A stretch of 63,434 nt of DNA, counting the filler, from Polymyxa betae A26-41 (taxonomy: Eukaryota > Protista > Endomyxa: Phytomyxea), in the NCBI GenBank assembly GCA_003693705.1. It is 5 parts of 5 records of this genome, joined end to end, with 100 filler letters (N's around TTAATTAATTAA, not from the genome) between each part and the next. Parts side by side here need not be neighbours in the genome. Positions count along the whole stretch, not along the records: positions 23,592 to 44,145 come from RBZT01000341.1; 4 more parts are not named here. One strand, 5' to 3'. This document shows, in pieces, positions 23,592 to 43,700 of this stretch (position 1 is its first letter; each line of letters begins with the position of its first letter). The position numbers and the translations under genes were made by a program. The notes beneath the pieces were generated by a model. The model saw only the letters and a list, made by a program, of their open reading frames with translations. It had not been told where the DNA came from and searched no databases.

Positions 23592-25175
23592 TACAAAACC
23601 TAATGGCTCATGCTTCTATAACGATACATGTTGGTTTTCTCGCTCGGTGAGCGGCTACGATTCAGAACGATGTGAGCCGAACACAATCAATAACAGAATG
23701 AGATGTATTAGAAGTGAAAATTGATCTTTAAATACTCGAGTCTATTAGGGCGCTCTCATACCTTGGTAAACTCCGCGGCGGAGTTTTCATCCACCGTGGC
23801 TGTAGGCCATCACCCACTGGTTTCACAGTATAGTAATTCTGCTCGTCGGGGTTCTCGAGCGACTTGGGTTGTTATGGAGGCGCCACACTGCTTACAGATA
23901 CTAGTCGAGTGTTGGCTCGTGGTGGCAGCGAGATTGTCTGTCGTGTGANNNNNCCCGCGTATAGACGTCTGTTATGCTCTCGGGATTGGACGCAATACCA
24001 ACAAGGATCAACTGACTGGAGCTTTTCAGAACTCCTGTTGTGTTTTGCATGTGCGCGTTATAATGGGTTAGGCTTCCTCATTCGTTAATAAGCTCGGAAG
24101 AGGTACATGACTAAATCCGCCCAAAATCAGCAGCTTGGCGCCGCAGCTTTCACTGATGATGACTTCACGCTCCTTTCCAATATTTGCTCCCGCTATCAGC
24201 ATGATTATCCAGGCAAGCAACTCTCTCCTGCGCAATTGATTCACGAGTCCATTACGGATCCTGATACAGACGAAATTCTTGAGCAATCTCCCTTTGCTAA
24301 GTTTAAGACAAGAACGCTGAGTTCAAATTTGCCCACATATTACAATGCAAAGGCTAAGCTGGCGGTCCTACTCACCAAAGCTGGTAACGTAACATAAAAG
24401 TGCGATAATATGGATTTCTGAAATTGTCGATATCTGAATTAGGATCAATAAAGACATCCAGCAAGGTTTTCCAGCGCCACCAAAAATCTGATCGTTGGGT
24501 CTTTGAAACGGCAAGCGACAGCCGTTGACCCCAACGTCAAAACCCACCTTGCAGTCTGTGTGCTCCACGACAAAACACTGTATAATATTGCGTGCATGTG
24601 GATCGGGTTACATGAGCAATTAACATATTCCAACAGTGTTACCGGTCGTGACAAAGTCCTGATAAGTTTTACGATGACAGCTAGCACTTCTACAGTGAAG
24701 GTGAGCAATGACGGTCTCCGCGGTTTTTCACACTGCGCGATAAGATTTCGGATCCTCACGAGCTTATACTTACATCGAAAATCTCTGAGACAGAGGCTCT
24801 GCGGAAATTATTTCGGGACCAAGTGCGGAAGCTGCTGAACTATGAAGTTGAACTATCGAATCCCGTTAAAACGAGCGTCGAAAAGATTGCGTTTACAGCG
24901 ATGATCAGAAGCCAGTGCGCTTGATGGTCACGCTGACTGTTACGGAGGACGAGGAAAGCGATGAAGCATTGTCTTCATAGCTCTTCTACTTATAAAAATT
25001 TTATGTTTCAAATAAAATTCAATGATAAAACAAATTTAGGCTGTTTTCCAGCATTTACCGCGGCTTCCCTGGCACGCTTTTCCGATGATGTTCAGTCTTT
25101 GCCGCTGAAGCAAAAACTTTTTAATTCGACCAAGATTCCTTGCATCTAGAATCGAGATAGATCGTCAACGCCTTG

Positions 25176-25490
25176 TGTTGGAATTCAATCAACATGCCTA
25201 TTGGACTTCAGAGTCATAGCTCAGTGGTAGAGCATATGAACGATAATCAGAAGGACCCGGGTTCGACCCAACAATCTTGAGGATGGAATTCCAACACCCA
25301 CCCCAAGCACATGCCTTGTCCTCCCAGAGGGACAATATCCGAGTAGGTCTTACGATCAAGTCCTACAGTGTTGTTAAAGGTCCATGGTGTTCTTTTTAGC
25401 GCTTCGGCTGTTAACCAGTAGAAAATACGCTAGGAGTCATCTGGACGACCCGGGTTCCGACTCCTGGTGACTCCTAGCTTATTTTTGACA
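25176..25490 (+). mobile_element. TRIM-like miniature LTR element with tRNA-containing LTRs and an inverted centre
   Basis: Outer ends TGTTGG / TTGACA; TSD-like CCTTG / CTTTG; minus-strand LTR end, PBS (25397-25416), about 100 bp non-coding, PPT GGGGTGGG, LTR start. Confidence 0.8.
25210..25269 (+). tRNA. tRNA-like cassette, 5' part; 3' part at 25447-25475
   Basis: A box TAGCTCAGTGG, D stem GCTC/GAGC, loop ACGATAA, B box GGTTCGAC; T stem CCGGG/CCTGG and acceptor TGACTCC completed downstream, then T5. Confidence 0.7.
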
Positions 25491-26254
25491 CTTTGTTTGG
25501 ATTTCACATATAGATTGGTGACTCAGCCGACATTAAGATAAATCTTCAGTTTCGTCATCTTCTCAATCTGACAATCCTGTGATTGTTGGTCTATTAAGGT
25601 TTTGTTAATCGGAGACTGGATTTCATAGTCTGTAACGTCCTCGACTTCAACGAAGAGATCACATTCGCAGATTGTTTCGAGCACAATAGTCTCGAGCATG
25701 GAGACTAACGATCGTGGCTGACCTAGTGTCTGCGAATCGCGAAAGTTTCGCAAGTATCGATCGCGGCTTTCCTTGAACTTCAAGATCGCCTTGCCATTCA
25801 GTTTCCGTACGACCGCAGCCATGTTCGTTTCGTGCACGGCGAGGTTGCCTGAGGTCACTCTTGATTGATTCAGGCAAATCCGGCATATTTCGAACTTCCA
25901 TTTCGTTCGCAACATAAACAGGCATCCATTTAGATAATCTTCCATTTCGTTCGGGAAAGCCTTGCGATACTCCACAACTGTTGCGGTTTCTCGAACTACT
26001 GATTTCACACACACAAATAATGATGGGAATACAATTCTGATTCTATCAATTCGACACTTCCTTCCGAACGGTCGGTCCTTCACGGAGTTCCTAACTCCGT
26101 AGATGCATATTAGGGCCGCCCTCTCCATAGTTTCGTCATCTTCGGTTTTTCTGTCTAATCAGATTTATGCGAGGAATTCTGCGCAGTGTCCTTACATTCT
26201 GCGTAGTCATCTGATATATCATTGCGTACTGGGTTGTTTATTACTACCACAAAT

Positions 26255-27680: not shown

Positions 27681-30507
27681 GCAGTTTCTCATGATAAATC
27701 AGGTTGAGCACGCCTTGCGAAAGTACCGCGGCCATCGAACCTTTCCTGCATCCATTAAGGCAGAATTATAAGAGTTTTCAACTAAATTGCGGACTTTTTC
27801 CGAAAAATTGCGTACGGACTTTTTGAATGTAGAATTGGACTTTCTGGACAAATTGTCGAGTATAGGTGACCGCTTCGGTAGCTTCCTTATTTTCGATTCT
27901 GCTTCAGGAACCCATTTAAGCAATAAAAGTTCTGCCTTTTCAGCCTCTCGTCAACTTCAGCTAGCCAGTATGGCATCTTTGGTAATCCCGTACGACGAGA
28001 GACGAATAGATTGAAGAGTGATTGTATTTTCAAGTCCGTACGGACTTTCATGATGAACAATTATAAAATTTGATCAATACTGTACCAATATTTTTCCTCC
28101 AGAGTCACGATTTGCCATCAAAACATTTCCCCTCAAATCATGGGGCGTAATTCATAGCACGAATTGATCACGGCACCATAGGAACTTCGGTGTTTGTACG
28201 GGTTTAGTAAAGAAGTTAGAGACCATATTCGAGGTTTCGCAATACTGAAGCATTCTTTGCCTTTCTGGGAACAATTCCCTTGTGTAATGGTTTTTTACTT
28301 CAATGTGTTTCGTTTTGTCATCGTTACTGTTGTCGTTAGTCACTATCAACGCTGCCCAGACTGTTCCCAAATCCGAATCCCTACCACCTCTCGACCAACC
28401 ACCCCACCTTCCTACGAACCATCCACCGAATCCATTCCCTAACCTCTACCGTCCACCCAATCGATCAACCTAACGATTCATCTCTCCCTACCCTTCGGTC
28501 CGACCGAGCCTCCTAAGGCTCGGGAGGCAAAGGTGATCCCGATGTCATTCGCAAGCATAGTGCTAGTTTCGTGGTATGCTTATGATATTGCAGTACTCGA
28601 AGTGCGGCTTTCCAGTGTTGGAATCCCGGGATTCTCGTCAATCGGCACAACATCCCGACTGTTTGCCTGATGTTAGGTCTAGTCGATCGTGCTATCCATT
28701 GTAGGCTTCCCACGAGCATGTCGTATGGTATCGGCTCAACATCTTCAGGCCTTCGTGGACCCATCTCTTCTGTCAGGTGAATACCAGGTTGATGAGGTGT
28801 CGGGACTGATCAAGTGTCTTCCGGAATATTGAAGTTATCAAGCTGTTCTTTAATAATCGGCTCCATGTTCCCGAATATTGAGTTGGTTTCTTTACAGTTT
28901 TTGACACACATTCCGAGCAGACTTGAAGGTTCTCCCAGATCCGTTATCTCGAACATTTCTTGTATGTGCTTGGTCAGTTTTTTCAACCAACTTCCTTTTC
29001 GTCATTATGAATGGCTCCTTTCCATGCCCGCCAGGCCATTGGGACTGTACAAAGCTTTCAGTAACCTACTGGGAGCTTTTGAAATGTCTTCCCTAGAGAA
29101 TTCCTCCTGTTGTATTAAACAGATTTCCTGATCAAATGGAGCATTCAGATATTCTTTTACGATGTCGATTCGTCTCAGACTCATGCCTTTTTTTGCTGCA
29201 ATAGCAAATATCGCTTTAAAGGATTCGCCGTGGGCCACCGGTGAGATAGACTCGTCGATGTCGATTCTAGCCCTTTGTGAGAAGTCTTCCACAACAAGAC
29301 GGGTCTTGAATTTCTTCACCGATTCTTATGAATTTTGCTTCACGCTGCAAATCCATTTACAGCCAATCTATTTAATCTTTTGGGGTCTGCTTCTAATCGC
29401 CATGTGCCTGCGTCAACCAATTTGTTAAAACTCATCTTCCACCGCAGCCAGCCAATATCTGTGATAGGGATTTGATGTATTGATAGCCTCTTGCAAGAAG
29501 TTCGGTATACGGGTCTCATGTGATTAATATTCAGCAAGTGTGGCCCGATTGTGCTAGTTAAAATCGCATACTTAAGGGCCTTGAGGATCATTTTCTTTGG
29601 TTGATTTGCTGCAAGTCGAATGAAAGAGCAGGTGAATCGAACGTCCCTTGTGTCTACTTTGCCTAAATCTTGATGGTAACGGTCTGGTTCATGTCGCATT
29701 CGAGTTGATATTCTGTGCTCAAACGGACTTCTCCGCAGATGCTCCTCGTTCGATGCATGTCCATCGTGGTTGCTTCTTTCTTCCGATTCATCTTCACTCT
29801 GATCATCAACGTTATCGGCACTCGCGTCTCTGTCTGTCAGAATTTCTTTCGCGTCGAAGTAAAGACTTGCGTCCCCATCGGATACCTGAAGTTCTTCGTC
29901 ACTTTCTCGTCATGGTTCATTTTCGTCTGAGTAATTACTTTCCCGGGATATTTCCGAATCGTTCAGGGCCTGATGATTTGTATGACTCAGATCTTCATCC
30001 CATGAGAATCTGTGCTCGTCGAATCTGACGCAATTACTTGTATACGAGGTTATTGTGCATGGATCTCAGATCTTGTAGCATTTTTGATTGTCCGCATAAC
30101 CGATGAATATTGCGCGTTTTGCCTTTTGATCTAGTTTGCGACGAAGCTTCTTTGGTATATGGGGCCAACTATCTAGATCCCCACACTTTCCACCTGTAAA
30201 CGTCGGGCAAATTTCCTGGACAAGGCTCTTCTGGAGATTTCTCTTCGTTCTCCGTACCGTCCAAAGCGGCCGTCGATGATTCATTCCGAATTACATTATC
30301 TGGGGCAATCGCGTCAGCCCAAAACCCCGGTGGGTGTTTTGAGTGAAATCTCATCACTTCGGCCTTTTCGATAATCATCCTGTTTAATCTCTCCGCTACT
30401 CCCATATGTTCGGGATTATATGCAATTGATGATTCGTGTATGATGCCCAGTTCTTTGCAGTAGTCGTTGAATATTTGAAGAACTCGGTTCCGCTGTCGGT
30501 TCGCCAC

Positions 30508-32069
30508 GTTCTTATCCTAAAATTAATACAAGAAATCGAATCTGGTAGATTAAATGAAGTACATAAAAACCCCTTCATCGCTACCATGGATGTCACTGCG
30601 CTATACACGTGCATTGACCTTAAATTGGGACTCGAATTAATTCGTGGACCATTACTCAGATTATGCAAAACAACTGACGAAGTTGATTTCTGCGTTGATC
30701 TGTTAGGTTGGGTTCTTCAAAAAAATTACTTCTCATTTAAAAATTCCTTTTATAAACAAATTAAGGGAGCTGCAATGGGAGGGAGTGTCTTTGGCATTTT
30801 CACCGAGTTCTTGCTGAAATGGAAGAATTCTTATTCGAAAAAGTCGCGAATCAAAAATTCATGCCAATATATTATAGAAGATACAGAGACGATATCGTTA
30901 TGATAGTAGACTCTAGAAAATCTGCTCTACTTATAGAAGATTTCTGGAATGAATCAAAATTCCTTAAATTTAACTTAGAGCAAATAGGATGTTCCGTCAA
31001 TTATCTTGATATATTACTATATATCTAGGTAACAATTGGACAGAAAGGAGACAATTGGATATAAAACCATTCTCCAAACCTACTACTAAACATGACTACA
31101 TACACCATGCCACCTATAAACCAGAGTGTACAAAAAACTCCTGGATCACGGGCGAAACTATTCGACTTATGCGAGCCTGTCAAACTGAGCGGATGTATAT
31201 AAAACAAATAAACCAATTCCAAAAAAACCTTAGAAAGGCTGAGTATCCGTCAAAGATTATTCGGGCGCATACCTGATATTCTTTCAAAGATCGCAAATGG
31301 CTCATTGGAAAGCAGCCAAAGAATGATAAAATATGGTTTGCCATTCACAATGGTAGAATGGCTCATGAAAAATGGAATTTTATGCAAAATAATTTCAAGC
31401 CATTGTTAAAGCTTAATAATATAAATATTACAGCTTCTGTTGGAACAACTACCATGGATAAAATCAACGGGGTATCTAAAAAACTCCTTAATGCGCAGCT
31501 GGCTACCAGAAACCAACAATATTTGAAACAGATGAATCATAATAAAAAGATTCGATATAGAAATTTCTAAATAAAAAGAAATCTGTTGATGTTGGTACGC
31601 AGCATGATACATTAGCTCTTGGCTCAAATATCACCGACCCTACCATGCGAAAACGGGCGCGTGATAAGATATCATCGAAAAACGCTGCCATAGAACAGAT
31701 AAGCGGCTCTGCCCACCCAACTGTTACTATGAAGTTACCTGTAAATCCGAATGATCATAAAAGATTACGGACTACCCAGGGCCAGAATGTTGAATCTTTC
31801 AAAAATTCTGGGCAACCGACGAAACGGCCTGATGAGGCGAAGACCGAAACCAGGTCGCATGGAATGAACGCGTCAGTCAATAGATATTCTAATAATAAAA
31901 TATCTATATTGCACCTTTTCAAAAGGAAGAAATCATAAACTACTTCCGAAAAGGATACCATTCGCAATATCTTTAAAAATAAAATTTTTGATTTTTTGCA
32001 ATATATGGAGCCCCTAATATTAATTTGCCTATAAAAGGCTATTTACGCACAGAACCAGTTCATTCTGGT
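30508..32069 (+). mobile_element. Penelope-like retroelement, 5'-truncated, inserted in the Copia integrase
   Basis: RT motifs TMDVTALYT, YKQIKGAAMG, YRRYRDD, NYLD, FSKPT...YIH; degenerate 14-bp duplication at 30494-30507 and 32070-32083. Confidence 0.9.
31825..31860 (+). ncRNA. Minimal hammerhead ribozyme-like motif in the Penelope 3' region
   Basis: CTGATGA-GGCGAAGACC-GAAA-CCAG-GTC core; stem I only 2 bp, probably decayed. Confidence 0.55.
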
Positions 32070-32461
32070 TGTCGTTTCGTCACTTTAACCACGAAATTCC
32101 TGCCGCTCGAACGACTGAACATTTTCTTCACGTCAGAACGGTGCTTGAGAAAATATTTCTAATAGTTGTGGAATAGTCATCAATGAACGATATGTACGGA
32201 GTATCTATTTTCGCCAGTGGGAAACGGTCTTACCACATCACTCCAGACGATCTCGAACCGCTCGTTTTGCGCGCTCATCGCGTGACTGAAATGGATTTCT
32301 GGTCATCTTGGCTTGTATACAGCCGTCGCATATGTCTTCTGGCTTGTTGATGTTCTGTTTAGCGAATTCGATAACCATGCACAGATTTAGGAACGCAATC
32401 TACGAGTTTCCCACAAAGATGGCCCGATCTCAGATGAGCCAGGCGTTTTTTGAAAAATATG

Positions 32462-32851
32462 TAGGGTTGGGGGAAAATGAACCCGACCCGAGCCGGACAG
32501 AGTCGGGTATTTCATTGACTGGGTCGAACCCGGGTTGGACCCGATCTCACTGATTTTGCTGAATTATCCGGTCTCATCGGGGATAATCCATCCTAACTGG
32601 TCTCGGAATGCTACTTTTGCTTTATTATCGATCGGTTGTCTCATCACGACCGTTTACACTGAGAAAATATATAAAAAGACTACAGTTCACAAATGTCCTG
32701 CAGAATGCGTTGAAAGTTTATTAGAATTTTTTTCCAGTCAACCCGGGTCGTAACCCGACCCGACCGAGTCGGGCCCTTGGCCAACCAGATCAGATCGGGT
32801 TGGGTATTTGTAAAACCCGACACGACCCGACCAGACCCCTTTCCATCCCTA
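32462..32851. mobile_element. hAT MITE
   Basis: TAGGGTTGG / CCATCCCTA ends; 8-bp TSD AAAATATG / AAAATATA; ACCCGA subterminal repeats. Confidence 0.88.
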
Positions 32852-34649
32852 AAAATATAATTGGTTCGGAGGTCATCGTCATGGTTCTGGCCCTCGTAGA
32901 TCAGATAGAGGTTGTTTTCGGTCTTTAATATATTTTGAATGGCATCAAAGTCTTTGTTGAGTAGATATCAGTAATCTCCAGTGAATAAACAATTTAATAT
33001 GCTCTCTCTCACAGACAGAGGATTGTGTCATGCCAGGTAGGTGGTGAACATTCTGTAATTCTAGGGCTGCGTTTTCTAGTTGAATAAGATTTCCCTGACC
33101 ATCGATGTTCATATCGCGTCCATCAGCGATTGTTATTCGCCTGTCTCCATTTCATTGCTGAATAATCGCCTATCCTGAATCCACATCCATTTTTTTGTTT
33201 TGTGGTCCTCTTTGCTTTCTGATGTTAAAGAGCACGTCATGTAACCCTTAATAGTGTCGCAGTTTATGTGGTTATTACGGTCTTCCCATCATTTCGGTTC
33301 TTTGGACGGAGTTGCAAACCAGCACTTTTGGTTAGAAAGATTGCCCTGTCGCACATAATTTTTGAACGTTTGGCTTCTTGGAAGCTGTGTTTCCAGTTTA
33401 TGCCGAAGCACAGCGTTGTCTAACTCGAGGTTTTAACTACATCGGCCGAATTGGCGGCTGAATCTTCTTTCATCTCGGAGTTGAGGTTCAGTTCTTTGTT
33501 CAACAGCATTTTTGTTACCTCCGCTGTAGATAGATCTCCGGAATGATTATCCAATACTGTGGCGACTCCGTCATATCCTTCAGGTAATTCTGCAAGAACA
33601 AACGCCGCAACAATCTTGTCCGGCAATGTAACACCGGATGAAACATTTTGGGGAGCACTCTTGATCTATAGCACATTCGACTGGATCGAATCTTTCCCTT
33701 CTTCTGTTCCAAACATTATCTTCACCGCTGCCACCGTGGCTGCGGAGGAAAAACGATTATATTGCTTCACGAGGTTTTTGCATCGTTTGTGTACCGATTA
33801 GGCTGCTTCTGCTCCAACTAAACATTGGACCCCGCTGCTTAAATGCTATCTTGGCTCGTGCTTTGATGTCATTTCTAATGGACAAAACCCTCCTTGCCGT
33901 CAGCTTTCAATTCGGGGGTCGTACGTACCATCTAACTTTCTTGTTGTCGGGTTGATTTGGACTACCAGGTCGAAGTCTTTGTCTACAAATGTCTACAAGC
34001 AGGATTATCATCCTTGAGCTCCATCCTCGGAAGCCACTCCCGTTGAAGACCCTTGTTCATTGGAGTCTGGGACCCTTAATCTGTTAAACTCGTACGGCGA
34101 GAGACGAATATATTGAAGAGTGATTGTATTCTCAAATCCGTACGGAACTTTCATGATGAATAATTATAATATATTAATTAATAGCGATATTTTTTCTCTA
34201 AGAGTCATGATTGGCGATCATAACAGCATCTCATCATCCGAAGATTCTGAATCATCGGGTTCCCTAAAGTCCCATCCAGATCGCCTCCTCTCTTAGCCAC
34301 ATCACTTTCCGAAGATGCCACTCGCGTTCGCTTGACATTCATCCTGCTCAGATTGTCAAACAGCTTTGACTTCCGGGGCATGGAGATGTTTTAATGCTCT
34401 GTCGAGTTTTTTCAGAACAATTTGCGCGCGAGTCGGACTTTTTTGACCGCGCAATTTTGTTTTTTGGAGCGGCGCACTGTTTGTGCTACGCATTTCTCAA
34501 ATGTGCGCCTCCTGGTCAGGCCACATCAAATAGTGGTTTGGCCCTATTTACCTAAATAGCTTACTTAGTGCTCTCCACCAATATTATTCAGTGTTATTTA
34601 GTGAAACCGCCTGTATTGTCAGTAATAGATTCTATTCCTCCCTCATAAC

Positions 34650-35210: not shown

Positions 35211-35617
35211 AAGGACACGATTTAAATGGCATGCTCTGGGTGCATTTGTCGGCTCTCACTGGAATCCGATATTAAGCAGTTAATTTGAATGCTTTATTGA
35301 ATAGATCAGCTGGAGCTTAAATAGGGCCCCCATCTCCGATCTCCGAACCAGCTTCAATATTTTCTCTAAGATTCCGATCTCGGAGCCGGTGGCCGCTCTC
35401 CACCACACCGCCTTCTCCAAGAACAAGTTCAACGAGTGCAGAGAGTCAGCTTGGGATAATAATATTGATAAACAAAATTTTCAATTGAGTTGTGAAGCAC
35501 CAGTAAAAACCTATAGAATATTCCGCAGCCATCGGTATAAAACTGATAGGAAAAAAGGTCTACTTCCTCAATGTGTCACAGTCGTCTGCGGCAAAATGTG
35601 CGTACAGATAAAATCAA

Positions 35618-37924
35618 GAAAAATTACACTGAATAGCACACATTTTTTGCGTATTTCACAGAATGGCACACTTTCTTGGATATTTATAAAATAACATACT
35701 TTTTACGCCGAGATTCAGAATTCGCTTCATCTAAAGACAGAGTGAATAAAAGCTTGAAATTTCGGGTATCTGCTATGCGCTTCGCTACATGTTCGACGAT
35801 TGTGTCCACTTTGTCCACAGCTCTTGCAGACGCGCCCAGTTTCCGACCCTGGGGCTAGACTGACAGCCTTTTTCTTTTCTCTTGGTAGCAGGTCTTCCTC
35901 TTGAAGGAACAACACGGGGCGGGAGCATTTCTTCGGATTACAAATTCGTCATTGTTATCGGGGTATAACATCTGTGTAGTGCAGAAATAATTGCGAACAC
36001 TTATTGCGCCCTACTTTAACCGTTATGATACATGTTATGTTACATGAAGTCTTAGAAGGTCCCATAACGACAATTTGCATTCAATTTTTTTATATGGAGC
36101 ATTAATGCGTGGCAATAAACAGATTACTTTTTCCATATTATTTCTTATTTTGGTTAAACATCGCTCATAAGTCTGTCGATAGTTTGATAACGTATAAACG
36201 TCTGAGACTAGACTAATTGGAGCTACCTCTACTTTGATAGCAAAAACGCAGGGATGACTGCACGGCACCAAAAAGTTTTGGTAAAACCTGCAAGAGCAGC
36301 TCCCGTACACGCTTTTTGATGAAGGTAATTCGATGACAAATTGCTGTCCTGACGCGACGATAACCACACCGGGATCGGCACTTACTGGGCGAACTGTCAT
36401 CAAGTGAGCATTTGTGAACTTGGTGTTGAATCTGTCCATGGCGGTTGGAACTAAGGGAGACACCCATTTCATTGAATCCTCTTCTCGCTTCTGAAACATT
36501 TCATTGGTGACGATAAAGGCTGTCCAGCCTTTCCAGAAGCGGCATCTCCCGAAATGATCGGATAATAGAATGGGCTATTTCGGCTAAATTGGAGGTACAT
36601 TGTCCATAACGGCGGTCTTACATGGCATACGTCGCCCAATGCTCGTGAGGAATCGATAGAACGAATTCTGCAGCGCTTTCTTTTAGCTGATATGAAGCGA
36701 CAATGCAAGCTTCAAATTTATCTTGCGTCTCTGCATTAGCGGCTTTCCTGAACAGCCCCCAGAAAAAGTTTAGATAAAAAAAATTTCTTGACGACATCAA
36801 ATGTACCTCTTCGCTGCAAGCCCGAGTTTTGTTTGCTCATTTGATCCGATGTGCCAGAAACAGTATGCATTCAAAGCATTGGGAACAATATCCTGAACTG
36901 CTTGTAAAAGGCCTTTTTCTCGGTCGTTAATTCTGACTGCTTCACGATCGTTGATGGACGGATACGCATCACGGATACCTTGCAGAAACCAGGACCATGT
37001 GTCGTAAAATTCGTTAGGAACAACAGCCCAGGCAAGAACCACAAACTGAACTTGTGCATCCATGCCGACTGCTAAAAGCAATATCTGAATGAAGCGATTC
37101 TTGGTAATTGGGCCACCAGCAGCCATGAAGCGGCGCGTTTTGATGAAAGCATCCGACAGCGCCAGGAGCAACCATTATTGAATGGAATCTTGGGGCATGT
37201 CCATCGGGCATCGCTTGTGCTTGTGTCTCGATCTTTGCGATAGTGCCATCTTCTACTTTCAATAGCTCATCAAATAAGAATGAAGAAAAGAAATTTGACT
37301 ACTTTGAGCATCAACGGAATCATTGAGTATCGTTTCCTTTGCCTTATGTGCCGTTGTGTAAGCGATCTCGCTGCCAATTCGCTGTTTGAGAAACATCTGC
37401 ACGTCTTTGACCGGAGTATTCTTGTTCACAATCATATCGATTCGGAGCAGATTAACAAGAAATTCATGATCTGGTTGGGTTCCTCGAGGAGCTTGCAGAG
37501 TCCCTAGTCAAGAATGAGTATCCCCTCGCCTCCCGACAACGTTGTGTTCAAGCTTCTTGAAAGCGAGAGCCGAGTGTAGGCCTGACAATTGTTCCCCGAA
37601 CACTTCAGAGCTGCACGATTTTTGTTTCGATTGGTAATCCTATAACTGAAGCCATGCTTTTGCGCATGGAAGCGGGCAGCATTGATCGCATCGTCCTTTG
37701 TGGCATAGCAGGCTCCTTCACCGAGAGCTGGTAGTGAGGCAGCTTGAGCTGGTATCGAACCGGTGCTGCCGAGCCTCATGAGGAATTACAAGAATAATGG
37801 ATGTACCGCACAACAAGAAAACAGATTCTGAAACTGCGACAAAAGTGTGCATTTTTATGAAAATCCAAGAAAGTGCCATTCTGTGAAATACGCAAAAAAT
37901 GTGTGCTATTCTGTGTAATTTTTC
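35618..37924 (-). mobile_element. Mutator-like (MULE) transposon with long TIRs and decayed transposase
   Basis: About 70-bp TIR GAAAAATTACAC...; AT-rich imperfect 10-bp TSD; LLLAVGMDA, DREKGL, CFWH, SWIM CSC...PCSH, CCHC CKSCGQSGHNRRTC. Confidence 0.93.
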
Positions 37925-38558
37925 AAAAATTCAATAATGGATGATTTGGATTATTGCCCAGAAAGTCCTGTATATCCCCGTGATTCTCAGTCCGAACACT
38001 GAATCCTGGACTCCAATAATCTTCAATATATCAAAGTTCCTCCATTTAAAAGAAATTAAATGTCAGTCTTTGTAGAATTATTTCTGGCACCCACTATTTT
38101 CTCTATTTCACGGGATGCTGTATCATAAGCAAATTGATTCAAATTTCTTCAGAAACATTAAGAGAAATATCAGAATAAAACTGAATTCGGTCCTCATGAA
38201 TTTGCTTAATTTCTTTAGTAAGTAAAGTCTCATCTGAAAAACGTAGCCGTTGTGAGTATCAGTTTCCCGATAAGGACCATGCCATTTCAAAGTTAATTTG
38301 TTCAGATGTTTCTTTTCAGGTATTGCAACCAAAACGTAATCTCGTTCCAAACTTGGGAAAAAATCGATTGCGAGAAGATCGCTGACTACGTTTCATCCGT
38401 TCACATTCAGTGATGTGAAAAATATTTTTTTGCACATTATTCATGCTCTCAATCAATTTATCCGTAGCCTCCTATGTATTTTCACTTTCTAACTCAATTA
38501 TACTAATAGTTCCAATTTGTGAATTGAGAAATATTGAATCAAGAGGATTGTCTGCTGG

Positions 38559-38993
38559 CTGGGCTGGAAAAAACCCGAATTTAGCTCGGAATAAAATCAG
38601 GTTTATGGATTCTTAGGGAAACCCCATATAGTCTTTGGGTTTTTTAGGTTTTATATCAGACTCGGTATTTATTAAACATTTAATGGGTTTTGTCAGATTC
38701 CTGATCATCGCAGGAGGAATGGGAAAATAGGAGATCGTCAAGTTCCTGCTGAGCATTCGGGAAATTAGCTCTGATATAGACCAGCTTCTCAACCCGCTCG
38801 GGGGCTAAAGAGCTCCGCAACTTTGTATCGATATATCCTGATTGGAGAAACTTCTTTCGCATGCCCACAAACTGCGTTATTTGCGAAAAAATAACGTAAT
38901 ATTGTAACCCGATTTTCTGGGCTGGAATAAAATCGGGTTGTTTTAAAAAACCCAAAAAACCCACGAATTAAAAACCCCGCGCTGCCAGCCTTG
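38559..38993 (-). mobile_element. Internally deleted hAT element
   Basis: Ends CTGGGCTGG / CCAGCCTTG; TSD TCTGCTGG / TCTGCTAG; remnant TKLRSSLAPERVEKLVYIRAN. Confidence 0.88.
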
Positions 38994-39199
38994 TCTGCTA
39001 GTAAGCCATTCATGACAGTAATAGGTGCAAGATTTCCCAATCGCTGTTGTGACCTATGATTCAAGGTGTGTTGAATTAGGTTACTCAACAAAGGCCATTC
39101 TAACTTGTGGTAAAGTAATTCAGAAATTAAGGCTCGTAATAGATAAAGAGTATCTCTCTATTAATGATTTCAATAGAACCTCTGGAATATTGAGCGTAT

Positions 39200-40717
39200 G
39201 CCGTCACGAAATGTTGTTTTGTACCAAGTCGTCTTGTTAATTCTTTCATAGTCTGGGATACAAAGTAAGATGCCTGATCAGAGACCTAAATCTCCGAAAT
39301 CCAAAAAGTGCGTCTCCGCAATTCCTGACGAGACATCAGCAGATCACCATCAAACTACGATGTACACAATGGGTGGTGGATCGGGGGTTGCGAATACAGC
39401 TTTCTTCTGTCCTGTATGGCCCATACTGTGCAGCTTGGCATCAAACATGGAATGTCGAGCTGTCGAAATCTTGATGTTGCTATCGGTCGTTTTCGGGATA
39501 CCATCAAAAAAATTTCCGACTCACCAAAGCTGTTGGAGGCTTTGAAGGCGCTATGTACCTCTCTCAATATAACTTGGCGAAACCTCGAGTTGGACGTCGA
39601 AACTCGATGGAACTGTACATGGTCTACTCTATGCTGAATTCCTTTGTCCTGCTACGAACATCAATTGAAGAGCTTCTTAGAAGAATTCGAGAGCGCCATG
39701 TAGGTTACTGTGAGTTTACCATTGCACCCTCTGATCCTCTGGCTTCTGAAATTCCTGCTGGAAGCTGGTATGCTGTTTAAGACTTTTGCAATTTTCCTCA
39801 ACCATTCAAAGACGCCACTGTTCTCCTGTCTGCATCACATTATCCGACTTTGAGAATGTCACTTCCTGTATTCTGTACCATTCTCCAGCACGTCCAAAAG
39901 TCAATTCAAGCTGCGCATGGCTTTAAATGTACATTGACCATCAAATTCGCGAAAGCCGTTCAGGATAAAATGGAGTCTTACTATGATAAGATCAACCAGA
40001 GCCATGTTCAGATCGCAGCTGTGCTAGATCCGCGCATCAAAGGATATCTCAACAAAATGGGCCTGTCCCACTGTTATTTTTCTGGTCTTACGCGAATACG
40101 ATGCCTTTTACAGAGCTCAATACGAGTGTTATTCCGCAATAAAGCAAGCTCCAGAGACTGCCGAGGCCCAAAGCGGGATTGCGGGCACCTTAATGAATAG
40201 TTTTATGGATGTATTCGACGAAGATGAAGGAAGCAGTGGTGATGCTCAGTCGTCTGAACCATTTCAAAACGAACTAGAACGTTGGTTCTCTTATGCCCCA
40301 ATGAAATTAGATCAAAGCTCCCACGATGTTTTAATGTGGTTTAAGCTCAATTCGGCCTTATTTCCCAGGGTGGCGTTTAAGGCAAGGGACTATCTAGGAG
40401 TAACAGCCACTTCAGTTCCGAGTGAGGTGGCTTTTTCACGCGCTGGAACGGTTGTCAGCAAAACACGTGCACGGCTGGGCGACGATGCTGTGCAAGCAAT
40501 TTGCGAAATGAAGTCATTTCTCAGTTTTATGAAGTAGATTTTAAATATAAAGCTGAACTTTTGTTTACTAATTTTTAATCGACTTTAGTCGACTTGAGTT
40601 AACTAGAAGATATGTTGAGTGATTAGAAGTCGATTGGGCACTGTCGACTGAAACTCAGCTGACTGGGTCGACTGTAGTCGAATGCAGTCGACTATATAGT
40701 CGAATCTGACACCCCTA
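39200..40717 (+). mobile_element. hAT transposon, 3' half
   Basis: C-AHTVQL, DVETRWN, AAVLDPR, dimerization WFK...FPRV...ATSVPSEVAFS; TIR ...GACACCCCTA; GTCGAC repeats. Confidence 0.92.
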
Positions 40718-43700
40718 ATCCGGTCCTAATTTAACGCGGAATACATCTCTGGGAGATAACAATAGTTGCGTTAAAGTATTTTCATATTTTAGGATATAGT
40801 CCACTAAAAAAAATCTTGGACATTGTCTTTAATCAATTCTAATATGTCGGAGCCAATATCTGCTCCTATCTCAAATTGATCAGAAACAATGTCATCGATA
40901 AGACTATCATCATGATTGAGAATTAAAGTATCCAAAGCATTGTTAGGATCAATGCCCAAAGTGATTAAAATGTCCTTTCCAAGCAAGAACTCTGTATTCA
41001 ATTGGTCCCATATGATAATTCTTTGACTTGATAGTATCAACTGCCCAGCCTTTGTCGCTAATTTAATATCACTATCAACTGCTTGAGTAACCTCATGAAA
41101 ATCAGAATTTGGCAATTGCAAAGTTAGAGATGGTTTTAGTGATTTGATCTGTAAATTCTTATCAAAGGCTTTTAATTTATTTAGAGCATTGCATGAAATT
41201 ATAGTAGGATCAGCCCCACTATCAAGGATTGCTTTACAGAGCAGATATCCGTCAGCCAGCAAAATTTCGATGCTACGATCAGTCATAGAGACATGATCAG
41301 CTACATTCGCTATAATGATATAAGCCGAAGATTTCGAAGGTGTATATTTTTACATTTTATATCAAGCGGTTAAATCCTTTTGCTCAGCCGCAGAAGGCTT
41401 CACCGGACATTATTTGACATGATGACCATCTTTCTTACATTTTAGAAAATAGTGAATAGTGCCTTTTTAGCAATAGATAATGATGATGATTCTGATTGTG
41501 TTTGCTGAGTTGAAACTGGACGCTTTCCAAATCTATTAGTATTCGGCATAGAATATTTAAAAACATGGTGATAAGTTTCAACTTTGTTATAAAGTTCGGC
41601 AACAAATCCAGGAATATCATCTTCAAGCTCGGAGTTTTGCCATTGAATCAAGTCTTCCATATGCATTTTAAACTCGATCGGCTGAAAAACCTCGCATTAA
41701 AAAACGGATATAATTTTTGGGACCATTCCGGGAAGTAAAAGAAGCCTTAAAATTGTTTGACTCTATTGATTCATCAAAGCAATAAACCAGGTGTGAAACC
41801 CGATCACGAGGCGGAAATTTCATCCTCATTTTTAACGACGAGACAACAGTTTCTCGTATACGATGAACACTGGATGCATCGGCGTCCAAATAATCATCAA
41901 TAACTTTCTTTAACTGGTCGTCCGTGTTACTGTACTGGTTCACATCCCGAGGTGAAATGATGGGTTTTAATGAACTTCATCAAACTCCCATCGATCATGT
42001 GTCTTAATTCAGCCGGGAATGCAGATGCTCAAGCCCCCCGCCTTTGAACGTCATATATTATGCCCCTGTATCGAGACACACTGTTCTTGAAGTCGATCAA
42101 GGATTTCCGATCAAATTTTTTCTGAAACGGTGGCTCTGCCGGCTTCAGCACTTATAGCAGTCCAGACAGTGGCAGGTGGTGCTGGCGCAAACGCATTAAT
42201 CTGGGCTTCTTCTGATTCAATTTGCATGACGTTGCCATGTCCCCTCACAGCATTGTCCACAATTTCAAGAGGTGCATGATCAGCGATTTGCTGTGCCTCC
42301 ATAATCAGCCTTTATGATCAGACTAAAGAAATTTCTTTGTCTGTTCTCACAGCAATCCGATATTAGGCAGTTATATAAATGCTTTATTGAGTAGATCAGC
42401 TGGAGCTTAAATAAGGCCCACATCTCCGATCTCCGAACCAGCTTCAATATTTTCTCTCCGATTCCGATCTCCGAGCTGGTGGCCGTTCTCCACCACAGTG
42501 CATTTCTGATGCCTTCCTACAAATATCATTCGCTAAACCTCCGTTAATAATTTATATTTTCCAAAAACGGGGCCGCTGATTATGCAGCATGATGAGTTCT
42601 GTCGATTAACGGTTTATGTTCCACTTAATCAGGTATTCATTTGAAGCCTTAGCATTTCCCCAGCTCTCCAGACTAACTGTATGACAGTCAAGATGTCAGT
42701 GTCTGTACCAAGTCTGGTAACAAATGAGCCCAGATGCTGAGCGATCTCAAATTGCGTTTGGGTTTTGCTTTTTTGGCGAATACGGAATACCATGGTATAT
42801 CGTACGGGACGTCATATTGAACTTTCAAGAAGCTTGGTGTACGCAAGACAGCGGAGATATGAATTTATAAACTACGTGGTATGAGTTAGAAACTGCGAGG
42901 TGTAATTTAGCATGGATGTGGGTAGGTGAGCGATGACGTACGGTACCGATCGCTAATTGTTAGCTCCAGCGTTAAAGAGTAAGCCTTTAACTGATTCAAA
43001 GATGGGATTAAAGCAAATCCTAGCTTTTTGGCCCAGTTGAGATGTACCAAAGAGCTAGCGTTTAAGATCTAAATCCCATCTTGTTCACTGGGAAGTTATG
43101 ATTTGAGAATGTCCGTTGTGGGATTTAATTTTCGCACCCTAAACCAAAAGGGTTGTAATTCTTATGTGCCATTACATACTGTTAAATTGATTTCAAAAGT
43201 GCGAAAGCAGTTTTTGCGAGCAACCACAATTTTTCAGAAAGTGCTTGCATAAAAATGCGAAAACCGTGGCGGACATCTTAACTGTCTGTGTAGTCTTTCA
43301 GAGTTCTTTTCGAGATGAACATAATTTTATCTTTATAATAAAGAGATCTGTAAATTGTGCGAAATCCGTATCTCTCGCTATGAGTTGGCTCCGAGTTTAT
43401 GGTGCGCACCCTGATGCGCAGAAAATCCGATGGTCCCCAAAGTTTGGCTATGAGTTTGTTATAGTCGTTCACAACTGGCCTATCATGGGCGACAATGGAA
43501 ATCTTGACGCTTTGGAGTTGTCTCTGATTTCGCAGTCCTCCTTGATGAACATTGGAAGCTCTGCTGCAACTTCGCTTGAGTCGTCATCTTTGGGCAAGAG
43601 AAAACGTCAGTTGCTTCAGAACGAGCAATTGGCAGCGCTCATATCATCGTATCACCAATACTTATCTGAATACAGTGAAACAAGTAAGAACGTTTGTCAA

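Follow-up and report, generated by a model that had tools for sequence, protein, structure and literature searches.

An old, internally inverted relic of a probable Helenus-type TRIM with tRNA-derived sequence in its LTRs

The 315-bp segment at positions 25176-25490 of the window (the whole 63,434-nt stretch of DNA that was analyzed) is a transposon relic and not a chance pattern. We read it, with a probability of about 0.72, as an old, dead, degenerate, and internally inverted copy of a Helenus-type TRIM (class TRIMp3). It is a so-far-undescribed member, from an apparently unpublished family, of an already described class. An earlier note on this DNA had proposed a miniature LTR retroelement with a tRNA-type Pol III sequence in its LTR; the kind of element was recognized correctly, but the copy is rearranged, with its inner module inverted, and does not have the intact LTR-interior-LTR structure that the note assumed. 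Because of this rearrangement, membership in Helenus rests on features other than direct LTRs. The copy is unable to transpose, since both composite LTRs are broken and the interior is wrongly oriented. At the level of sequence, a difference of ~23% over 30 nt between the two LTR heads, together with the imperfect target duplication, points to an old copy.

Ends, inverted layout, and proposed history

The element starts with TGTTGG and ends with GACA, giving the termini TG...CA, and a T5 run (25482-25486) lies ahead of the right end; the TGTT start, ACA end, and preceding T run reported in the earlier note were thus all recovered. So were the flanking pentamers that it had taken for a target duplication (Table 1), for which agreement at 4/5 positions or better has a chance of ~2%. 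No ORF was found in the 315-bp element, its internal domain included, and no further copy of the element was found in the 20.5-kb piece (23592-44145) that contains it.

Table 1. Features of the element and its flanks, by position along the window
Feature	Positions	Strand	Details and evidence
Candidate left target-site duplication, CCTTG	25171-25175		4/5 positions same as CTTTG at 25491-25495
Outer LTR head, TGTTGGAATTC..., 34 nt	25176-25209	+	Inverted repeat of it at 25268-25296
tRNA-derived segment: acceptor 5' strand, D arm with A box, anticodon arm (loop ACGATAA), T-stem 5' strand, T loop with B box	25210-25268	+	Rfam tRNA, 22.5 bits; lacks T-stem 3' strand and acceptor 3' strand
Inner LTR head, inverted, TGTTGGAATTCCATCC... 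on minus strand, directly after PPT	25268-25296	-	Inverted-repeat search, shuffles
Polypurine tract (PPT), GGGGTGGG	25297-25304	-	Adjoins inner LTR head TGTTGG (TGTTGGAATTCC)
Non-coding internal domain	25305-25395	-	No ORF; single copy in piece
Primer-binding site (PBS), GGTTAACAGCCGAAGCGCTAA	25396-25416	-	Complements D-stem 3' strand and anticodon stem-loop of tRNA-Asn(GTT)
Inner LTR 3' part: degenerate T loop/stem, acceptor 3' strand TGACTCC, TAGCGTATTTT, CTACT end, directly before PBS	25417-25451	-	Inverted arms of 24 nt, 88%; palindrome alignment; hairpin fold
Outer LTR 3' part: T loop (GGTTCCGACTCC), T-stem 3' strand, acceptor 3' strand TGACTCC, TAGCTTATTTTT, GACA end	25452-25490	+	Palindrome, fold
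Candidate right target-site duplication, CTTTG	25491-25495		Pairs with CCTTG at 25171-25175

In all, the locus retains four LTR ends. The outer pair, a head and a tail, is on the plus strand, and the minus strand carries an inner module running tail-PBS-interior-PPT-head. The two heads, compared in inverted orientation, agree at 14 of their first 15 nt (a score equaled in 0 of 2,000 shuffles) and are ~77% alike over 30 nt. At the right edge, the plus-strand tail TGACTCCTAGCTTATTTTTGACA is 88% like the inner tail over 24-nt arms, and the palindrome that they form extends to its center, ACCCGGGT. Read downward from 25441 on the minus strand, the order is GATGACTCCTAGCGTATTTTCTAC, T, GGTTAACAGCCGAAGCGCTAA, ~90 nt of unique sequence, CTTGGGGTGGG, and TGTTGGAATTCCATCC.... 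The pair of matching ~120-bp LTRs proposed earlier (25176-25296 and 25369-25490) was not upheld: global alignment gave ~49% identity, and the only local match between the two intervals is a 23-nt T-arm stretch. We also rejected 25369-25490 as an LTR starting TGTTGTT, its first 48 nt being inverted interior and PBS.

LTR elements begin minus-strand synthesis from a tRNA primer and plus-strand synthesis from a PPT, and they integrate with a short duplication. Here the PBS begins one base after the LTR tail ...TTTTCTAC. Its plus-strand form, TTAGCGC-TTCGGCTGTTAACC, matches human tRNA-Asn-GTT primer and fragment sequences at 21 of 22 positions, the primer reading GGTTAGCGCGTTCGGCTGTT and the fragments (tRFs) TCGGCTGTTAACCGAAAGG; the tRNA-Asn identity was set from these published human sequences. 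The 14-mer TTCGGCTGTTAACC occurs once in the window, with 0 occurrences expected by chance, and a scan of public collections with an 18-mer of the PBS returned eight chance matches, none of them at a tRNA. By its pairing, the PBS is a predicted site for a 3'-truncated tRNA-Asn(GTT), that is, for half-tRNA (anticodon-loop) priming. On the minus strand, the PBS (GGTTAACAGCC...) and the PPT (...GGGGTGGG) bound an interior of ~120 bp. All three parts named in the earlier note are therefore present; their arrangement as flanks of the tRNA-like LTRs is not: the tRNA-like sense strand carries neither PBS nor PPT, both of which are on its complement.

To our knowledge, anticodon-loop priming has been documented solely in some lineages of the Copia superfamily. 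Copying of the element would have depended on a trans-acting autonomous LTR retrotransposon, most likely one of the Copia superfamily by analogy, given a PBS that pairs with 3'-truncated tRNA-Asn(GTT) and a candidate 5-bp flanking duplication.

An intact LTR was reconstructed from the parts of this one copy by joining 25176-25258 (83 nt) to 25452-25490 (39 nt). It would be ~122 bp long, with the 34-nt head followed by a ~72-nt tRNA-derived unit that contains both the A box and the B box; a short tail, rich in T, would close it with ACA. With a 120-bp interior, the full element would measure 364 bp, and loss from one LTR of ~49 nt, corresponding to the tRNA 5' part and 5 nt of the head, would leave the observed length (2 x 122 + 120 - 49 = 315 bp). 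Each joint falls within, or immediately next to, a copy of the 8-nt T-arm palindrome ACCCGGGT (25255-25262 and 25448-25455). An inversion or fold-back between the palindromic T arms of the two LTRs, combined with one deletion, would produce the present layout and would account for both the 315-bp length and all four LTR ends. A clean two-break inversion does not fit, because the T loop (CCCGGGTTCGAC) is found on both sides, indicating a short duplication at the joints. The inversion may date from the reverse-transcription step, or it may be a subsequent chromosomal event; one copy fits either. On this account, the locus would be one example of a palindromic tRNA arm within an LTR seeding inversion or fold-back.

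The same parts, with a plus-strand head and tail outside and a minus-strand tail-PBS-interior-PPT-head inside, would also result from nested insertion, in which a plus-strand solo LTR was struck in its T arm by an oppositely oriented copy of the same family and two later deletions took most of the incoming LTRs. Although the ~23% difference between the heads suits two separate copies, we consider this history unlikely. It requires at least four events (an insertion, formation of a solo LTR, and two precise deletions), and no 5-bp duplication surrounds the inner module. Moreover, the right outer part starts at the CCCGGG core, which would be expected to the left of the proposed insertion point, and a length equal to that of a full element minus 49 nt would be a coincidence.

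The tRNA-derived segment and the palindromic hairpin

Both internal promoter boxes described in the earlier note were confirmed. The perfect 18-nt D-arm/A-box sequence TAGCTCAGTGGTAGAGCA occurs a single time in the window (0 expected by chance), with the A box TAGCTCAGTGG at 25217-25227 and the B box GGTTCGA at 25260-25266. The B box is present again as GGTTCCGA (25453-25460), and GACCCGGGTTCGA, present at 25254, recurs at 25447 with two mismatches. Judging from the literature on related elements, we presume that the tRNA-derived unit served as an internal Pol III promoter.

In contrast, the claim that the LTR is mostly a tRNA cloverleaf with all four stems pairing failed, as did the tRNA-finder and covariance-model check proposed for it. 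ARAGORN called no tRNA gene in the element or anywhere in the piece 23592-44145. The best Rfam family for the segment was tRNA, whose 22.5 bits fall short of its gathering score (29); E values were 0.041 over 701 bases and 1.2 over the full piece, in which no Rfam family reached its gathering score. The fold of 25210-25282 was no better than that of shuffles (z = 0.14), and within 25210-25279 the acceptor and T stems are unpaired. A four-stem cloverleaf exists here only as a composite of two halves. The further point that the anticodon loop is non-canonical and decoding unlikely agrees with our data: position 33 is C, and no tRNA was called. As for the second unit, "GGAGTCA ... TGACTCC" at 25433-25474, we rejected its reading as a tRNA with a deletion; it is the core of a 65-nt near-perfect palindromic hairpin that includes the T-rich flanks (z = -6.9; 0/500 shuffles).

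The embedded gene is tRNA-like, and no 5S rRNA sequence was found in the element by Rfam at any threshold. A genuine tRNA-Cys(GCA) gene on an unrelated eukaryotic metagenome contig (L001, 237-309, minus strand) begins with the same 24 nt as the segment; this gene was the sole match in a metagenome scan with that 24-mer. Identity over this stretch hints that the captured tRNA was Cys-like. A 24-mer from the T arm and acceptor gave no match in the viral and prokaryotic collections scanned. Elsewhere in the piece, the palindrome GGGTCGAACCCGGGTTGGACCC (32520-32542), which is ringed by repeated CGGGTCGGGT motifs (32480-32800), has 16 nt identical with the T arm of the element (32520-32535); it was rejected as a related copy, as the identity does not extend to a significant alignment.

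The tRNA-like sequence also raises the question of a tRNA-derived SINE or a decayed cluster of tRNA pseudogenes, whose LTR-like features would be coincidental. The heads of SINE2 elements are likewise tRNA-like and bear A and B boxes, both of which occur here, and the second unit is followed by a T run. SINEs differ, however, in their LINE-derived or A-rich tails, target-primed reverse transcription, variable target-site duplications, and absence of PBS, PPT, and LTR ends. The locus has no A-rich or simple-repeat tail and ends in TG...CA, and the 21-nt tRNA-Asn complement beside an LTR tail and the G-rich PPT beside TGTTGG are not features of SINEs; such an origin is thus very improbable. Slightly more improbable still is a fold-back or MITE-type DNA transposon made up of hairpins, in which unit 1 would carry 15-nt terminal inverted repeats and unit 2 would be the 65-nt hairpin. 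The inverted repeats are indeed significant, but the whole 315-bp unit is without terminal inverted repeats past TGT/ACA, unit 1 alone is without a flanking duplication (CCTTG versus CCCAC), and the PBS and PPT would be left unexplained.

Comparison with Helenus and Cassandra

The earlier note knew of no described TRIM family with a tRNA in its LTR; such a class was in fact published in 2024. Helenus comprises TRIMs with tRNA-like sequence in their LTRs and forms class TRIMp3 together with Cassandra and Ajax (Kojima 2024, Biology 13:119; PMC10886601). It includes 113 families in rust fungi, a few in Agaricomycetes, and others in six animal phyla and Selaginella, with total lengths of 311-1263 bp (PMC10886601). 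Fungal Helenus elements have 5-bp target-site duplications, anticodon-loop PBSs (including tRNA-Asn-GTT), and Copia helpers, the last inferred from similarity of the PBS region and, in one case, of the interior (PMC10886601). All animal Helenus elements described so far have 4-bp duplications, use tRNA 3' ends as primer, and are linked to Gypsy (PMC10886601). In Helenus, the tRNA-like part is not regarded as a working tRNA; its presumed role is that of a Pol III promoter (PMC10886601). Helenus elements are thought to have arisen through insertion of a SINE2 into the LTR of a TRIM.

The relic resembles these elements in most of its architecture. Like theirs, its reconstructed LTR runs from TG to CA over ~110-125 bp and consists of a head, a tRNA-like unit with A and B boxes, and a T-rich tail ending in (g)aca; the A box (TRGCY..YGG) and B box (GGTTC) lie inside the LTR. 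Shared as well are a non-coding interior of ~100-140 bp, a G-rich PPT, and a tRNA-like part that is unlikely to decode; the candidate 5-bp duplication, with 4/5 positions agreeing, would have the length seen in the fungal families. The anticodon-loop PBS right after the LTR has the layout of the iMet PBS ggttatgagcccagcgc that opens many published interiors; in those consensuses, ggttatgag... comes after ...aca, and in the element the PBS stands one base past the LTR tail. Published internal portions close, on their 3' side, with G-rich sequence of the form shown by the PPT GGGGTGGG. By eye, the small-LTR architecture and the outer tail resemble small Helenus LTRs (...cccgggttcgagtcctggtggagccatttcttttctgaca) such as those of Helenus-9_PSt and Helenus-6_PTrit, which are also the nearest in size (LTR, 111-112 bp; interior, 97-99 bp; total, 321 bp). 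With respect to the primer, the closest are Helenus-3_PGr and LTR-2_PSt, which use tRNA-Asn.

The locus departs from published Helenus elements in being truncated and in having no direct-repeat LTRs, its inner pair of LTR ends being inverted relative to the outer pair. When k-mers of the element were looked up in the published consensus file DataS1.fa, only generic tRNA motifs and one 10-12-mer at chance level were found, in a k-mer look-up that matches split by line wraps could escape; that 10-12-mer was the only match from the LTR head or the interior. The PBS also differs from that of the Asn-primed families of Puccinia: it follows the TTCGGCTGTTAACC form as in human, whereas the Puccinia families read gattaacagtcgaa. 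These families start c(g/a)attaacagtcgaa, reflecting a different tRNA-Asn sequence (PMC10886601).

Because the PBS copies the TTAGCGC-TTCGGCTGTTAACC form seen in human and not the Puccinia form, we considered a further proposal that joins two parts: a Helenus lineage outside rust fungi, and hairpin "LTRs" centered on the T arm as the footprint of snap-back synthesis in reverse transcription. We hold this combination to be speculative and doubtful. If true, snap-back synthesis would be a hazard peculiar to an LTR that carries a tRNA stem-loop, and if the host were an animal, the element would be the first Copia-type animal Helenus, with a half-tRNA primer and a 5-bp target-site duplication.

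The analogy to plant Cassandra drawn in the earlier note is sound insofar as the element is of a non-autonomous kind with tRNA-derived sequence in its LTR, both PBS and PPT, and a candidate 5-bp duplication. Cassandra follows the same design: it is a non-coding TRIM, and each of its LTRs contains a small fragment of a Pol III gene, internal promoter included. However, its fragment is 5S and not tRNA, it belongs to plants, it is longer (565-860 bp), its transcripts have been shown experimentally, and it has no sequence relation to the element described here. Least probable of all is an intact, possibly active, undescribed TRIM with two homologous 120-bp LTRs and a cloverleaf in each, for although the overall size and the listed motifs are present, the proposed LTRs have only 23 nt in common, neither forms a cloverleaf, and the class is already published.

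As a degenerate Helenus-type copy, the locus has limited weight beyond annotation, being a real but ordinary transposon relic. For that purpose, tRNA-like hits in this genome may stem from LTRs of Helenus-type TRIMs and not from tRNA genes or SINEs, which is relevant to counts of tRNA genes and to repeat libraries.

Surroundings of the element

The piece at 23592-44145 is eukaryotic and transposon rich, with Copia pol fragments on its minus strand (RVT_2, Pfam) and, by eye, Gypsy-like gag, protease, and integrase pieces. A ZAD domain in the ORF adjoining the element was unsupported, as Pfam found nothing there, and exact protein look-ups of three ORFs of the window gave no match.

A decayed Copia element occupies 27980-34230 on the minus strand. 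Its LTRs of ~146 bp, 6.1 kb apart, are 89-92% alike (27980-28069 versus 34082-34172), and it contains RVT_2 and integrase-like ORFs. The sequence after its 5' LTR, GATTAAGGGTCCCAGACTCC, approximates the complement of the anticodon loop of tRNA-Lys(CTT), with 15/20 positions matching the human sequence. From this anticodon-loop-type PBS (GATTAAGGGTCCC), close to tRNA-Lys-CTT, it follows that half-tRNA-primed Copia elements exist in this genome. We rejected this copy as the direct helper of the TRIM, its PBS being Lys-CTT-like and not Asn. Apparently inserted in the Copia element are ORF pieces resembling a Penelope-type reverse transcriptase (30433-31273, plus strand), recognized by eye from the motifs GAAMGG..., YRDD, and KPT..H; they had no Pfam match and no homologue in a word-indexed protein search.

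Farther along the piece, a hAT remnant (39329-40534, plus strand) had, in an exhaustive search, only relatives at 50-71% identity, in metagenome contigs. Just past its ORF, at 40538-40718 (plus strand), is a weak Rfam match to an alphacoronavirus 5'UTR (29.1 bits versus a gathering score of 70.3; E = 0.0014), which is almost certainly spurious. A 2.3-kb MULE-like element (35618-37924) is bounded by terminal inverted repeats of 52 nt with 98% complementarity. By eye, a transposase core can be recognized in its ORFs, as can a CxC...CxH motif of the SWIM type. A word-indexed protein search with a MULE ORF gave no homologue at the length window searched. The near-identical ends suggest that this element was inserted recently. 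Finally, a 132-nt direct repeat (35283-35414 and 42373-42504; 90% identity, 7.1 kb apart) probably represents a pair of LTRs, those of a Gypsy-like element with the MULE nested inside it and the hAT remnant also within its bounds; parts of the Gypsy-like element would include a protease (40807-41349) and integrase-like ORFs (38126-39157, minus strand).
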